DNA of 63,779 bases, counting the filler, from Guillardia theta CCMP2712 (lineage: Eukaryota > Protista > Cryptophyta): assembly GCF_000315625.1 (NCBI RefSeq). It is 7 parts of 7 records of this genome, joined end to end, with 100 filler letters (N's around TTAATTAATTAA, not from the genome) between each part and the next. Parts side by side here need not be neighbours in the genome. Positions count along the whole stretch, not along the records: positions 1 to 16,857 come from NW_005434358.1; 6 more parts are not named here. The stretch is one strand, 5' to 3'. The notes beneath the pieces were generated by a model. It was given only the letters and a program-made list of their open reading frames with translations. It was not told the origin of the DNA and searched no databases. Position numbers and translations under genes: made by a program. Each line of letters begins with the position of its first letter. Positions within the stretch are counted from its first letter, which is position 1. Below, piece by piece: positions 7,819 through 14,184 of this stretch.

Positions 7819-9064
7819 ATGCTCATTCCTACTTTCCTTGCTCTGTTGACACCACTGGTGCCACTGGGAGGAGGAGGAGGAGGAGGAGGAGGAGGAGGAG
7901 GAGGATTTTCTTTGCATTCTCCGCATGTTCGGGCAGGGCGACCTTCTCTGCTTCCTCTCCTTGCCAAGTGGCATGGCCGTCAGCCGTTTCCTCCTCCCGT
8001 GGTGTTCGAGGCGGCAGAGGAGCACACGGCCAGCATCATCTTCCTCCATGGCTTCGGGGCGCAAGGGGCCGGGCGGGGGCAGCAGCTGGAGGAGCAGCTG
8101 GACTTGCCGTGGTGTCGCGTCGTGTGCCCCCTCGCCCCTCTGCGCCCCACCAGCATGGGGGACAGGCAGAGCTGGTCGAGCGTCGACCTGCTGCCGCAGC
8201 GACTGCTGGCTGGGGAGGGAGGAGGGAAGAGAAGGAGAACGACGGGAGAGGAGGAGGAGGAGGAGGAGGAGGAGCAAGGATGGAGAGACGGCTTCCCACA
8301 GGGAGGAGGAGAGAACTTGAGGGTAATCGAGGAGGATGAAGTTGACGCGTCGCGCAACGCCGAGTACATCAAGCGCCTCATTCGAGCTGAGATGCGAGCT
8401 GGAGTGCCAGCAGACCGGATCCTCCTGCTGGGGTTCTCTCAAGGCGGATGCGTCGCTCTGAGAGCTGCCATGACACTTGAGGAACGAATAGGAGGAGTCG
8501 TAGCTTGCTCTACGTCAGTGAATCCTGCTCCTCCCTCTCCTCCTCCCTCTCCTCTCCTCCCTCCCTCCCTCTCCCTCCTTCTTTCCCTTCTCACTTCCTT
8601 CAGGTGGTTTCCGCGGCTCAGGAGCTCAGCGCGAGTGAGCGCTACAGCGAGAGAAGTTCCGATCCTCCTCCTGCACGGCAAGACCGACTGGGTTGTTCCT
8701 CCTGCTCTTGGACGGCAAGCGGTGAGGAAGAAGAGTTGAGAGAGAGGAAGAGAAGAGGGGGGGGGGGCGGGGGGGGAGGGAGGGGAGGGAGGGGAGGGGG
8801 GAGGGGGAGGTGGTGGGGATGATGGGGCTAAGGGGAAGGCAGGCGGAGATTTGCAGGAGGATTGGACTCCAGGCATCCTTAGAGGAGTTTGAGGTAAGAC
8901 AAGAGGAGCAGGAGAGGAGGAGGAGGGAGGAAGGGGGTAGAGGAAGAGAGAGGAGGAGGAGACTGAGAGACGGGCAGGGCGTCGGGCATGACATCACTCC
9001 TGAGATCATCCGGAGGCTCAGAAAGTTGATGCAGGAACTCGCTCCTCGAATAAAGTTGACATGA
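7819..9064 (+). CDS. Acyl-protein thioesterase / phospholipase-carboxylesterase family alpha/beta hydrolase
   Basis: IIFLHGFG, RILLLGFSQGG nucleophile elbow, LLHGKTDWVVP (Asp) and GVGHDIT (His) in the last exon; introns near 8520-8603 and after about 8722. Confidence 0.88.
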
Positions 9065-9386
9065 CAGAGGACGAGGAGCCGCCACCACCACCACCACCAC
9101 CACCACCACCACCACCTCCTCCTCCTCCTCCTCCCCCCCACCTCCACCCCCACCAGGCCGTTGAAATGAGAGGAAGAGGGTTGATGAGATCTTTATAGTA
9201 CACAGTCAAAAGGACGTTAAAGATTGAAGGTAAGAGAGGAGAAGAGCAGGAAGAAGAGCACAAGGAAAGGAGGAAGAGCAGGAGAAGGAGGAGGTAGAAG
9301 AGGAAGAGGACGAGGAGAAGGAGAAGGAGCAGGAGGTGGAAGAGGAGGAGGAGTGAACGTGGAGGATGAACGGACGGGCAGCTTTG

Positions 9387-9477
9387 TCACTTCACACCGT
9401 CTGGGCTGTCAGTCCTCCGGATCTTGTAAAGCTTATGCATCTGCATCTGAGTGAGACGAGAAGAGGAAGAGAGGGAA

Positions 9478-9518
<41 letters not shown>

Positions 9519-10271
9519 ACCTTGACTTTCTGGTCGTGAATCTTCCGGTCATGAATTTGAATTTCTCCGATAATCCTGAGGGAGGAGGAGGAGGAGGAGA
9601 AGACAACGCAGACTTGAATGTCTCTGTACCCATCCTCCACCTCCTCCACCGCGAACTTGTTCTTGACGCGCACCAGCGGCATGAGGGGATGCATGCTGCT
9701 GCTTCCCGTCACCCACCCGAGCACCTCCAACATCTGCGAAGGGCCTTCACAGACGATTGAAGAGCGAACCTGAGCGAGAGTCAGAGGAGGAGGAGGAGGA
9801 GGAGACGGAAGAGGAAGGAGGCGGTCTGACCGGATCGAGGATGTGGCGGGTGAGGGGCCAGGTCTTGCCGTCCTCCGCATAGTCCTCGAGCTTCTCACGC
9901 ATCCTCTCCTTCCGCTTCACTGGCGCACTGCAGACCTCCACCACGCTCCTGCCGTCCTCGAAGTCGCAGTCCACGAAGATGCCCGAGCGAGACCCGGCTG
10001 AGCTCGAGCCGGAAGCGAGGTGGGAGTGGTGCTGGAGAGAGGGGGAGGCGGAGGCGTGGGAGGCGACTAGCTCGAAGACCCTGCGCTGGAACTCTTGGTC
10101 GAGCAGGTTGGCACGCGAGTGAAGCTGAGAGAGGAAGAGATCCTCCTCGAGCACGTGACCACCCTCCACCTGCCTTCCCAGCTGACTCTCCTGCTGGTAC
10201 CTCATCTCTTCCCTCGCCGCCTCGTCCACGCGTATGGCCCCTACCTGTTATGGCAATCAGGGAAAGAGAAG

Positions 10272-10323
<52 letters not shown>

Positions 10324-12538
10324 TGGAGGACGAGAAAGTCGAGGACGAGGACGAGACCTCGGAATGGTCTTGCGTGTGGATACCAGCAGGACCCCAGCTG
10401 ATCTCGGGAAGGGCCACGAGCTTGAGGCCATGAGGGAGGGACTGCATGTCGTGGTAGCGGCTGGTGCAGGAGGCCGCCAGGTAGTCCATGTGCTCCTTGA
10501 GCTCCTCCTGCAGCAGCGCGAACATGCGCGGGTAGTCTCGCCACATCCTCAGCTGCAGGAGCTTCTCGCGGAAGTACTGGAAGCGAAATTCAAAGTCGTC
10601 GTCCACCAGATTCGACAAGGCCCCCTTCGTCCTCCTCCCTGAGCCTCTTCCATCCCCCCCTCCGAGTCTCTGCCCCTCCTCCTTGTCCGGCAAGTCCATC
10701 CATATGGAGAAGGAGTGCGTGGGATCGAGGAGCTTCACGCAGACGTTCACGATCAAGTGAAGGAGGAGGAGCATCCGGGACCCCTCCTCCGTCAACGGCT
10801 TCGCCAAGTCCATGTTCCCCCAGCTCTCCTCCTGCTCTCTGCTCCTGCTGCGAGCATCGACGTCCCTCAGGAACGTGCCTAGCAGGTCGACAGCTCGAGG
10901 GTCGAAGTCTCGCATGCAGAAGAGCGACGAGATGGCGACGAGCTGGGAGAGGGAGAGGGTGCCTTCCACCTTCCTCCTCCTCCAGCTCCTCACCAGCAGG
11001 GATCGCTCGCGCGCCAGGAAGAAGCCATCTTCAGCTCTGATTCTAAGCGCCTCCCTCACTTCCGCCATCGCCCGCTTGAGCTCAGAGTCCAACTCCTCCT
11101 CCAGCTGACTTCGCCGCCAGTACACGAAGATCGCCCCGCAGCAGCAGCAGGTGAGGAGGAACAGGAGGGAGGGGACGATGATGATAACGAGCAGCAGGGT
11201 CTTGCTGAGAGAGGTCCCCCTAGGAGCAGGCACGAGAGGAGGAGGAGTCTGGGCATCCTCAGTCGACCCGGGGGCAGGAGGGAACACGTCCTTGGTCTTC
11301 AGCAGCCCTCGCGTCACGCTCCAAGTCGCCACCACCTCGTAGATGAGAAGCCCCGAGCTGGAGACCAGGAGCTGACCAACTTCGAAGTCAAACCCCAGCA
11401 GCGCCCGATCTCCGGTCTGGTTCACAAACCTCACTTCTCCTGTCAGCCCCGCAAATTCCCGCTTTCTCGTCTCGTCTGCCAGCTCACGCCCTCCGCCCGT
11501 GCTTCCTGCCAACCCAAACGCCATCGCCCACACAGCGTCGTAAGCGAAGGCAGCAAGAATGGAGGGAGAGGAGGAGAAGGAAGGTTCTAGGCCGACGGCT
11601 GCCGCTGAGGCGTTGGCATCCTCCCACATCTTGAGCATCAGACCCTCTCGTCCGGTCAGCGGTGCCTCCCGGATCCACAGCCAGCCGGCGAGCAGCTGGC
11701 GAGCAGCTGGCGGATTCTTCATGCCGCCCACGAGAACCTCCGGGTCAACCTCGCCGGCGAGCACCCACGTCCTGTCAGAGAGCAGCTGATGCGCGTCTGC
11801 CAAGGCGAGGAGAAGTTCGAGCAGGTCGGAGCTGCTGCTGTAGAGGAGGATGACGGAGGCAGGGGAGGAGGCGATGGAGGCCATGAGAGAAGCATCGGGA
11901 GGGAGGCTGACCGGTAGAGCCTCTACCATCACCCCTGGTTCCTGCAGTAGCTTCAGCCCGGCAGCGAACTCATTGCCTTCGGGAGAGTCTTGGTAGAGGG
12001 CCAGTATGGAGCTGAAGGCGTACTGCTTGAGGATGGTCGCGGCGGCGAGGGCGTCGAACTCGAGGGTGAGGGAGGTGCGGGAGAGGAAGGGAAAGAGAGC
12101 CTTGTCCGCAAACGACTTGAGCTTGGCGCTGTAGCTCATCACCGACAAGCCGCTCGGGGCAGTGAGCGAGCATGCGGCTTCAAGCTCAAACGTGTCGAGG
12201 TTTGCGACTATGGCGTCGGGTGGCTGCGACCACGACAAGATGTCACGAGCGATGAGAAGAGGCGAGAAGGAGGTCTGGAGGAAGGAGACGTTGAGCTGGA
12301 AGGGACGCGGGAGGGAGGCAGCCTCCTTGACCACCACGTTGCTCCTCGCGTTGACATGCCGAGCTGCGATGGCGAGGGCGAGGAAGGCGTCCCTGAGGTC
12401 ATTAGACGAGAAAGCAGAGGTGTTGCTCGCCGACCGCAGGGGAGAGACGAAGAGGAGGCTTGCGCTGGTTCTTGCGGAGAATCCGAGGGTCAGGTGCGAT
12501 AGGAGCAGGAGGAGACAGAGAAAGTTGGCATCAGCCAT
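9387..12538 (-). CDS. Single-pass receptor: signal peptide, ANF-receptor/periplasmic-binding-protein type-1-like ectodomain, TM helix, cytoplasmic RelA/SpoT-like nucleotidyltransferase domain
   Basis: Signal MADANFLCLLLLLSHL; ectodomain motifs FADKALFPFLSRT, AFAYDAVWAMA, EFAGLTGEVRF..TGDR; TM LLLVIIIVPSLLFLLTCCCCGAIFVYW. Downstream exons (about 10244-9831, 9770-9521, 9440-9387) give APVKRKERMREKL, ILDPVRSSIV, RVKNKF..DGYRDIQV, IGEIQIHD and MHKLYKIRR. Confidence 0.75.
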
Positions 12539-12698
12539 GGGGACACGGAGATCAGGGAAAGAATTTGTTGAGTTCCATGCTGAAGAACCTGTCCAAAAGA
12601 CATCAACGGCAAAACATGACTTCCAACTATTAAAATGTCTCTCTCGAAGTGTTTTCCTCTTGTTCCAGCACCCTGACTTTGTCATTCTTCAACCTCAC

Positions 12699-13181
12699 TG
12701 TCTTGTCTACTGCTCAGCTCAGGCCTTGTCTTGTCTACTGCTCAGCTCAGGCCTTGTCTTGTCTACTGCTCAGCTCAGGCCTTGTCTTGTCTACTGCTCA
12801 GCTCAGGCCTTGTCTTGTCTACTGCTCAGCTCAGGCCTTGTCTTGTCTACTGCTCAGCTCAGGCCTTGTCTTGTCTACTGCTCAGCTCAGGCCTTGTCTT
12901 GTCTACTGCTCAGCTCAGGCCTTGTCTTGTCTACTGCTCAGCTCAGGCCTTGTCTTGTCTACTGCTCAGCTCAGGCCTTGTCTTGTCTACTGCTCAGCTC
13001 AGGCCTTGTCTTGTCTACTGCTCAGCTCAGGCCTTGTCTTGTCTACTGCTGAGCTCAGGCCTTGTCTTGTCTACTGCTGAGCTCAGGCCTTGTCTTGTCT
13101 ACTGCTGAGCTCAGGCCTTGTCTTGTCTACTGCACAGCTCAGGCCTTGTGTTGTCTACTGCTCAGCTCAGGCCTTGTCTTG
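12699..13181. repeat. 28-bp minisatellite TGTCTTGTCTACTGCTCAGCTCAGGCCT, about 17 copies
   Basis: Near-identical head-to-tail units without spacers; variants cluster at the right end. Confidence 0.95.
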
Positions 13182-14184
13182 TTCTTCTCCTCCCCCTCCC
13201 TTCCTACGTCTTCATCGCGCGACTTGTTTTTGCAGATCTTGTATCCGAGACAAGATTCGAACAGGGTGGGGTCCAAAACTAGTCAAAAGAAGGGGTACTC
13301 AATAGAGTAGAGGAAAAGAGGGGGACGGACGCAACCTCACCACCGGTGGGGTCATGGAGAGGTAAAAGAAGGGGTAGGGGTACTTACCAAGAGACCGCTG
13401 GAAACAAAGGAACCAGACCCGATAATGATGATGGGGGTGGGTGACTATGTAGGGTGGGGTCAAACATAGGAGCTAATTGCTCAACAGTGGGGTGATGGTC
13501 TCCTGAGGTGGGGTAGGGTCTAGGGGGTGGGGTAGAGAAGGTGGGTAGGCGGTCTGAGCTGTAGTCACTCAGGTCTGCCTCAGGACCAGCAGGCGATTGT
13601 CACGGTCAGGGAGTGGTTGGCCCGACTCGTCAGAACTGAGTTTTCAGAGTCAAGTTTCCGGTGACTTCCTCGGACTCGAACTTGCTTCGGAACTCGCGGC
13701 TACCTTGCTTACCTTGGCACTGACACAGTGACGGTCGTCGGTCGCTCGTTGGCCTGGCCTGGGCTGATCTGATTGAGTGAAGCGTGACGAAATCATCGAG
13801 TCAAGCTCACCGGTGCTTCCCGGCGTGACATCCGACGACCGTGACCGGGTCAACTTGAACGCACACAAAACTAGAATTGAGGAGCACATGAGAGCATCCA
13901 GACATGAGGGGACCTTAGCAAGTGACGCCGACCTAGGAAGGTCTCCTCCTCGTCTCTGCACTACCGTGGCATTGCCGCTAGGAGTCGTCTTGGTTTACAG
14001 GAGAGTTTTTGTTAACTCGGCGCTATCAGGCTAACTGGCACGGCTGGCATACGATCCATCAACATCCTCATCCCTGGGATCTGCGATCGTGGGTCTGAGC
14101 AGTACTAGGGCTTGATTGGTAGCTCTGCCAACCTGACCAAGTGGGGGGAAGTCAACCTCGACTCCTTCCATGTCCTAGCGACTG

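Follow-up and report, generated by a model that had tools for sequence, protein, structure and literature searches.

Signalling by (p)ppGpp-type nucleotides is known in eukaryotes from the bacterial-type RelA/SpoT homologues (RSHs) of plastids and from the animal hydrolase Mesh1. To our knowledge, an alarmone synthetase of the eukaryotic cytosol has long been missing. Divergent, unplaced synthetase-only proteins termed divRel have been described in fungi, Dictyostelium and the diatoms Thalassiosira and Phaeodactylum (Atkinson et al. 2011, PMC3153485), in a paper from which the words "transmembrane" and "receptor" are absent. Here we analyse a gene of the cryptophyte Guillardia theta CCMP2712, GUITHDRAFT_122367, which lies on the minus strand of contig C316 of the 669-contig, 87.1-Mb genome, at positions 9387-12538 of a window of 63,779 nucleotides (the whole stretch of DNA analysed; positions refer to it unless another contig is named). 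Its product is probably a type I single-pass receptor, in which an outward-facing Venus-flytrap domain would act through a helical module on a cytosolic RSH-superfamily synthetase-like output domain making an alarmone-like messenger. A preliminary description of the locus had called this output domain a RelA/SpoT-like nucleotidyltransferase: its fold and catalytic residues uphold that assignment, whereas the Pfam RelA_SpoT model finds no match and residues for the GDP/GTP acceptor are replaced. The receptor family to which the protein belongs is a concrete candidate for receptor-controlled alarmone-like signalling in the eukaryotic cytosol and, if the reading is true, adds a new output enzyme to the kinases, cyclases and phosphatases found among single-pass receptors.

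Predicted fold of the C-terminal domain

Structure prediction shows an RSH-type α/β nucleotidyltransferase fold for the C-terminal domain. The AlphaFold2 (AF2) model of residues 700-967, built with 36 relatives in the alignment, has a predicted local distance difference test score (pLDDT) of 77 and a predicted template modelling score (pTM) of 0.72, its core strands and helices reaching pLDDT 80-97. When this model was compared with the PDB using Foldseek, all of the best 50 matches were RelA/SpoT-family synthetases (E 1.2e-6 to 7e-4, probability 1.00), among them RelP, RelQ, an exported small alarmone synthetase (SAS) of Streptomyces, RelSeq, T. thermophilus Rel, ribosome-bound RelA, Tas1, CapRel and FaRel2. 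A second model, of residues 475-967 (pLDDT 78, pTM 0.74), returned the same list for model residues 280-490. By structural Z score, RSH entries (14-9) stand clearly apart from every other transferase (8.8 or below), and the best structural matches of the domain are RelQ, RelP and Rel rather than tRNA-modifying enzymes. In the ESM Atlas, PF04607 (RelA_SpoT) is found in 66 of the 100 nearest named clusters, and the Atlas model has template modelling scores of 0.52-0.63 to GTP diphosphokinase clusters. The preliminary description had named the lack of a Pol-beta/RelA-type fold as a finding that would count against it, and AF2 followed by Foldseek returned a RelA-type fold.

Catalytic residues and sequence relation to RSH enzymes

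The motifs picked out in the preliminary description, VKRKERMREK, ILDP|VRSSIV (the bar marks an exon junction), RVKNKF..DGYRDI, GEIQIH and MHKLY, are present in this order over three short exons, and a profile-profile alignment bears out its assignments of the Asp (DPVR), the GY loop and the Glu (EIQ). The RSH profile used for this comprised 14 sequences: E. coli RelA and SpoT, together with plasmid-borne Rel and SAS genes from Listeria, Azospirillum, Prevotella, Monoglobus, Rickettsia, Neisseria, Staphylococcus, Bacillus, Ruminococcus, Enterococcus, Rhodococcus and Mesorhizobium. Aligned to it with hhalign, the receptor family pooled with a second G. theta family (described below) matched at E 5.6e-6 over 135 columns (probability 86%), and the second family alone at E 2.4e-6 (probability 89%); the receptor and second families are clearly homologous to each other (E 7.7e-18, probability 99%). 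Against E. coli RelA alone, or RelA plus SpoT, the expected register was recovered at an insignificant probability of 2-9%. Sequence searches of the PDB with a paralog, the family profile or the ectodomain gave no match.

In the alignment, K837 and K845 correspond to both lysines of GRvK...S...K, D864 to the Mg-binding Asp (RelA D275, whose RelSeq counterpart we take to be D264), Y913 to the G-loop Tyr (RelA Y319), and E934 and Q936 to RelA E335 and Q337, while R867 sits two positions ahead of the usual RSH Arg. Conservation of these positions was counted among 110-170 relatives: D864 is kept in 170/171, E934 in 112/112, Q936 in 112/113, R867 in 171/171, K837 in 152/154, K845 in 155/159, N902 in 156/156 and Y913 in 100/116. 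The residues kept are presumably, to judge from the RelSeq, RelP and RelQ structures, the set concerned with ATP phosphates, metal and catalysis. The stretch aligned to the RxKD/ExDD motif reads V-K-N-K and the motif is unconserved; RVKNKF had been considered as that motif and was dropped, since the better alignment places V-K-N-K there.

Gene model and transcript

One spliced mRNA joins the ectodomain exon and three small exons. An 814-residue open frame on the minus strand (12685-10241) includes the start ATG at 12538, and four exons (12538-10358, 10244-9831, 9769-9521 and 9446-9387), spliced at GT-AG sites and all in phase 0, yield a 967-residue protein identical, letter for letter, to XP_005818426.1 / EKX31446.1 / UniProt L1I5D2. 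The public label is "hypothetical protein GUITHDRAFT_122367", Guillardia theta CCMP2712, and the UniProt name covers the ligand-binding region only. The features of the transcript are as follows:

5' untranslated region (UTR), to at least 12590, minus strand: seen in contig X2 record 8
Exon 1, 10358-12538, minus strand: residues 1-727, with signal peptide, ectodomain, transmembrane (TM) helix and helical juxtamembrane module; donor GAG|GTCTCG
Intron 1, 10245-10357, minus strand: 113 nt, GT..AG, mostly (GAGGAC)13.5; missing from the cDNA contigs
Exon 2, 9831-10244, minus strand: residues 728-865, giving the RSH-like domain its N-terminal helices and first strands; carries K837, R841, K845 and the Mg-Asp D864 (9836-9834)
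Intron 2, 9770-9830, minus strand: 61 nt, GT..AG; interrupts the catalytic motif ILDP|VR
Exon 3, 9521-9769, minus strand: residues 866-948; carries R867, the RVKNKF strand (N902), the G-loop DGYRD (Y913, 9628-9626) and E934-x-Q936 (9565-9557)
Intron 3, 9441-9520, minus strand: 80 nt as judged from the RNA contigs but annotated publicly as 74 nt; holds (GAGCAG)6.5
Exon 4, coding part, 9387-9440, minus strand: MHKLYKIRRTDSPDGVK; stop TGA at 9389-9387
3' UTR, to about 9180, minus strand: 179 more contig letters within the repeat-masked 9200-9356

For the RNA check, contigs from three runs of three studies (X1, X2 and X5, which are only guessed to be RNA) and one raw RNA run were placed on 9200-12640. 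An intron-less contig of 3110 nt (X1 record 1) covers 12541-10363, 10246-9829, 9767-9612 and 9442-9357. These coordinates leave no room for introns and agree to the letter with the junctions 10358|10244 and 9831|9769; where the pieces overhang by 2 nt, the letters are common to both sides of a junction. The same contig fits the junction 9521|9440, and contigs of X2 and X5, from two other studies, repeat the same junctions. Since the contigs lack all three introns, their source is spliced RNA; and since these exons have a single 100% copy in the genome, no processed DNA copy lies behind the contigs. The preliminary description had named beforehand, as a finding that would count against it, transcripts placing the ectodomain frame and the small exons in separate genes; what was found is a single spliced RNA that joins all of them.

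The public model is identical to the splice model of the preliminary description, and the RNA contigs bear out its four GT-AG exons and single protein, except for the last acceptor. In the contigs the last junction joins the donor at 9521 to an acceptor at 9441/9440, reading ..DQKVK|MHKLYK.. and giving 965 residues, and the contig piece 9442-9357 is compatible solely with acceptor 9440. The acceptor at 9446, which both the annotation and the preliminary description use, lies 6 nt upstream and adds Met-Gln (..KVK|MQMHKLY) to give 967 residues. Paralogs with an uninterrupted frame at this point read K|MHRLY, matching the downstream acceptor. On the RNA evidence, the downstream acceptor and a 965-residue protein are therefore favoured; residue numbers here follow the 967-residue model. 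The two sites form tandem acceptors at 9440-9446 (cag|ATGcag|ATG), 6 nt apart, the contigs of three runs and the paralogs fitting the downstream one.

Hexamer microsatellites make up much of introns 1 and 3, with (GAGGAC)13.5 at 10272-10355 and (GAGCAG)6.5 at 9478-9516. The open frame of exon 1 overruns the true donor at 10358 because intron 1 consists largely of the in-frame (GAGGAC)13.5 repeat, which gives it a false poly-Ser tail; such an in-frame repeat could mislead annotation based on open frames in the G. theta genome. At the 5' end of the transcript, a 126-nt X1 contig joins both strands at 12548/12590 (a fold-back, window 12512-12590) and is probably an assembly or library artefact.

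Ectodomain, membrane helix and juxtamembrane module

The signal peptide, ANF-receptor-like ectodomain, single TM helix and helical linker of the preliminary description were all recovered, respectively as a hydrophobic N-terminus read directly, as a match to PF01094, as one hydrophobic segment, and as helices over residues 475-727 in the AF2 model of residues 475-967. They are placed as follows:

Signal peptide, residues 1-19, 12482-12538, minus strand: hydrophobic N-terminus judged by eye
ANF_receptor / Venus-flytrap (type I periplasmic-binding-protein) ectodomain, 11402-12310, minus strand: Pfam PF01094, six-frame match at C316:11402-12310
Single TM helix, residues 447-474, then RRSQ, 11117-11200, minus strand: Kyte-Doolittle window maximum 2.93, the sole such segment past the leader
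Helical juxtamembrane module, residues 475-727, 10358-11116, minus strand: conserved, about 250 residues

The ectodomain matches PF01094 at E 4.7e-18 and 65.8 bits (cut-off 25.4) over profile positions 21-341 of 353, covering both lobes, and the full-length protein record (P0003) repeats this result. Paralogs likewise begin with secretory-type leaders. The leader, together with a single TM helix that precedes RR, is consistent with a type I topology, in which the ectodomain would be extracytoplasmic. A Phe after the leader (..TLG|FSART) was considered as a cryptophyte plastid-targeting signal; this was dropped by reasoning alone, a flytrap strand following within about 8 residues and paralogs lacking the Phe.

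The juxtamembrane module was found by phmmer in relatives with CHASE, ANF or phosphonate-binding sensors, and in the AF2 model of residues 475-967 it is predicted to form helices packed against the enzyme domain. Scans of the Atlas and the PDB gave no look-alike for this module, which was modelled only together with the enzyme domain, and weigh neither for nor against a pseudo-HD reading of it. Some Foldseek alignments to the N-terminal halves of Rel proteins extend over it at a root-mean-square deviation of 16-20 Å. A predicted homodimer of residues 475-967 scored 0.00 in a run that made no use of an alignment, and counts neither way.

A modular receptor family

The receptor belongs to a modular family, in which one output module stands behind ANF, CHASE or periplasmic-binding sensors. 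Homologues of exon 2 and of exon 3 each occur at about 16 further places in the G. theta genome, at about 15 other loci. At C7, C35, C60, C80 and C18 the exon-2 and exon-3 matches abut in one open frame with no intron 2, which is exactly what the exon 2/3 junction ILDP|VR predicts; recurrence of this kind is not due to chance. The paralog frames begin V-G/R/Q-A-I/V-R, like exon 2 (VGAIR), and their preceding Gln codon fits the CAG acceptor; when 17 relatives are aligned over their intracellular parts, the exon 1/2 junction is bridged by an invariant motif, Q-D-H..V.A.R. At nine G. theta loci, namely C1, C47 (two), C80 (two), C108, C133, C262 and the window gene, an ANF match on the same strand precedes the enzyme domain by 1-3 kb. 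Inverted, near-identical paralog pairs 10-12 kb apart occur at C80:110393-113420 (-)/124305-127291 (+) and C47:5616-8366 (-)/17956-20741 (+), and suggest recent segmental duplication of the receptor family.

Across 1.84 billion representatives, a profile search returned 1563 proteins at E 1e-3 or below, 105 of them at 1e-30 or below. Those with a named source come from G. theta, Hanusia phi and Cryptomonas paramecium, the remainder being MMETSP transcripts and metagenomes. A family of about 1,500 clusters in public protein data escapes the Pfam RelA_SpoT model. Other homologue searches returned 15 short proteins without Pfam domains (family profile), four proteins (domain region of P0003) and near-identical enterobacterial RelA only (RelA as query). 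Several relatives carry ANF_receptor before the enzyme domain, one of them with Ephrin_rec_like and one with Peripla_BP_6 in addition, while CHASE takes this place in the G. theta protein P0002 and Phosphonate-bd in P0022; every long family member has one TM helix between sensor and output. In P0125 (573 residues, from a JGI metagenome), Guanylate_cyc (residues 220-414, E 4.5e-43) is fused directly to an RSH-like core (residues 414-567), placing two nucleotide-converting output domains in one chain. The modular ANF, CHASE and binding-protein sensors, together with this cyclase fusion, argue for a genuine signalling module.

A second G. theta family, long RSHs and hydrolases

The second G. theta family comprises multi-TM proteins with two RSH-like domains on C1, C18 and C48, plus proteins on C214 and C81. 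It touches PF04607 weakly, at E 0.002-0.03, the best match reaching 18.7 bits (E 0.002). Its loci are:

Second-family loci: C1:840436-843486; C1, about 834-837 kb; C18:576-579 kb; C48:3.9-7.1 kb; C50:417.6 kb

Intron-less members of about 1020-1050 residues have two RSH-like domains flanking a multi-TM region (PF04607 E 0.02). At C214:9230-11080 a multi-TM N-terminus is followed by one C-terminal RSH-like domain (PF04607 E 0.002), and at C81:41200-44142 lies a soluble-looking protein with one RSH-like domain, poly-Ser inserts and an assembly gap.

Two long bacterial-type RSH genes, at C47:131-133 kb and C24:131-132 kb, carry HD_4 and RelA_SpoT above the Pfam cut-offs, and the six-frame genome search found HD_4 solely at these two genes (C47:131263-131712 and C24:131220-131609). 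The G. theta genome encodes at least 20 RSH-like synthetase-fold domains.

Proposed mechanism and alternative explanations

In the mechanism we propose, ligand binding would alter the conformation or oligomeric state of the flytrap, by closure or re-packing, and the TM helix and helical module would pass this change inward and switch on the enzyme. The enzyme would then take the β,γ-pyrophosphate from ATP and attach it to an acceptor nucleotide at the 3'-OH, and the product would be a cytosolic alarmone-like messenger: (p)ppGpp, (p)ppApp or a relative. More tentatively, and with somewhat less than even confidence, we suggest that cryptophytes and unidentified environmental eukaryotes possess a class of "receptor pyrophosphokinases", in which interchangeable sensors (ANF, CHASE, phosphonate-type) would gate an RSH-fold enzyme to make an alarmone-like cytosolic messenger outside the plastid stringent response.

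Several results weigh against a receptor synthetase. PF04607, with its 27-bit gathering threshold, is matched by none of the window exons, the intron-less paralogs and the 36 relatives, even at E 10; no family member reaches any model in NCBIfam, PHROGs or PADLOC; and the receptor family alone aligns to the 14-member RSH profile at E 3.3e-4 with a probability of 38%. The Arg of GRvK is replaced by Pro835 and the Ser of that motif by Arg841; in the G-loop PK.NGY, the Lys has become Val and the Asn Asp or Gly, only G912 and Y913 being kept; in GY.S.H the Ser is D915 and the His a variable residue; and the Arg-Thr of EIQIRT is H938-D939. From the RelSeq, RelP and RelQ structures, we take most of the changed residues to be those that hold the guanine-nucleotide acceptor, and part of the donor, in RSHs. 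The protein could also reside in an endomembrane rather than in the plasma membrane. In the raw RNA run, 6% of the data held just 3 reads of the gene, indicating low expression there. Lastly, the six-frame HD_4 search of the genome did not find a stand-alone Mesh1-type hydrolase, which leaves no obvious enzyme to break down a cytosolic alarmone. A near-invariant catalytic set beside a changed acceptor set nevertheless speaks for an active enzyme, with an acceptor that may be something other than GDP or GTP. Because the acceptor-site residues are replaced, the acceptor cannot be named, and (p)ppGpp is no likelier than another product; the preliminary description had left room for a different nucleotide messenger. 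With neither a Pfam RelA_SpoT match nor an acceptor-site signature, the domain is therefore placed in the RSH superfamily as a divergent branch, rather than being counted among (p)ppGpp synthetases.

Three alternatives concern what this domain does. It might be an RSH-type pyrophosphokinase with a macromolecular acceptor, the tRNA 3' CCA end, like the toxic SAS enzymes (toxSAS) CapRel, FaRel2 and PhRel2, so that the receptor would throttle translation directly. We regard this as unlikely, given that the closest structures are RelQ, RelP and Rel and not tRNA-modifying enzymes, that some 15 paralogs, constitutively encoded and fitted with diverse sensors, look like parts of a signalling system rather than a toxin, and that the relative fused to a nucleotide cyclase points toward small-molecule signalling. 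The RSH fold might instead serve another Pol-beta-type chemistry (NMP transfer, or synthesis of linear or cyclic oligonucleotides) or a non-nucleotide acceptor; the gap in Z scores between RSH entries and other transferases, and the retention of the RSH-specific EIQ and GY motifs, make this improbable too. A catalytically dead pseudoenzyme, binding nucleotides or scaffolding and signalling through partners recruited by the helical module, would account for the replacement of several RSH donor and acceptor residues and for the failure of the HD_4 search to find a hydrolase partner, and SpoT-like proteins with a weak synthetase exist. We nonetheless give this explanation about one chance in ten, as the Mg-Asp, the Glu-x-Gln and the phosphate-binding Lys are 96-100% conserved over more than 100 diverged relatives, as expected of an active site.

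It might also be asked whether the receptor and the enzyme are one gene at all, or a receptor gene and a small neighbouring enzyme gene joined by read-through or assembly. A contig running across two genes is by itself no proof of a single transcript, and the contig runs are RNA only by guess. Against this stand the contigs themselves, which lack all three introns and hence come from spliced RNA, and the presence of one 100% genome copy only, with no processed copy. Exons 1 and 2 join in frame: no stop comes before the donor, exon 2 has no ATG-led start, and an invariant motif crosses the junction. Moreover, sensor or TM helix and enzyme stay in one chain at nine paralogous loci and in independent transcriptome proteins from Hanusia and Cryptomonas. 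A fusion artefact is thus highly improbable, and a receptor with an RSH-like output is the reading that we carry forward.

Neighbouring features

Two further features flank the gene. Upstream, about 110 nt beyond position 12590, the farthest reach of the contigs, a near-perfect 28-bp tandem array occupies 12699-13182 (17.3 copies, 98% matches); it may be part of the promoter or UTR, or a neutral minisatellite. On the plus strand at 7819-8739, a convergent neighbouring frame matches Abhydrolase_2 (phospholipase/carboxylesterase, E 1.4e-30) and is broken by Gly- and Glu-rich low-complexity runs.

Comparison with known systems

The preliminary description knew of no characterised example of this architecture, and we found no published description of an ANF-TM-RSH protein in open-access text, where the slash form "RelA/SpoT" is unsearchable and absence is weak evidence. 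The gene model is already public; the alarmone-synthetase-like reading of the C-terminal domain, and that of the family as receptors with such an output, appear to be new.

By fold and catalytic core, the closest systems are RelQ and RelP (SAS1/SAS2; PDB 5dec, 6fgk, 6ewz, 6ex0) and the Rel/RelA/SpoT synthetase (1vj7, 6s2u, 8acu). In contrast to these, the receptor family has no Pfam RelA_SpoT match, its acceptor-side residues are replaced, and it has invariant residues of its own (P857, P865, N902, D915 and D939). The protein studied here is, moreover, eukaryotic and predicted to be membrane-anchored behind an extracellular sensor; unlike a long RSH, it gave no HD_4, TGS or ACT match in the Pfam scan of its full length (P0003). 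The plastid RSH1-4/CRSH enzymes, of which G. theta has two, belong to the same superfamily, yet they are soluble and of the long bacterial type, whereas the receptor is a predicted membrane protein that lacks a hydrolase domain and whose synthetase-like domain is far more divergent. Tas1 (a pppApp synthetase, 6ox6), CapRel and FaRel2 (tRNA pyrophosphokinases, 7ztb and 8pu1) and the exported Streptomyces SAS (8vx3) serve bacteria as effectors, toxins or defence proteins and come with antitoxin or immunity partners, while the receptor family is eukaryotic and multigene.

The divRel proteins resemble the receptor family in being eukaryotic, not of plastid type, synthetase-only and without a matching small hydrolase (PMC3153485). 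They differ, compared by description, in that they were detected by RSH profiles and are described as consisting of the synthetase domain only (PMC3153485). The ESM Atlas neighbours of our domain include diatom clusters named "RelA/SpoT domain-containing".

In overall plan, the nearest counterparts are the receptor guanylyl cyclases of the natriuretic peptide receptor type, which share the PF01094 ectodomain and, by prediction, the single-pass topology and an enzymatic output that uses nucleotides. The Pfam scan of P0003 found neither a kinase-homology domain nor Guanylate_cyc PF00211, the latter occurring only in the relative P0125; in place of these, the G. theta protein has a predicted RSH-fold transferase as its output and an unrelated helical module as its linker. 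If the proposed class of receptor pyrophosphokinases is real, it would constitute a eukaryotic signalling system parallel to the receptor guanylyl cyclases.

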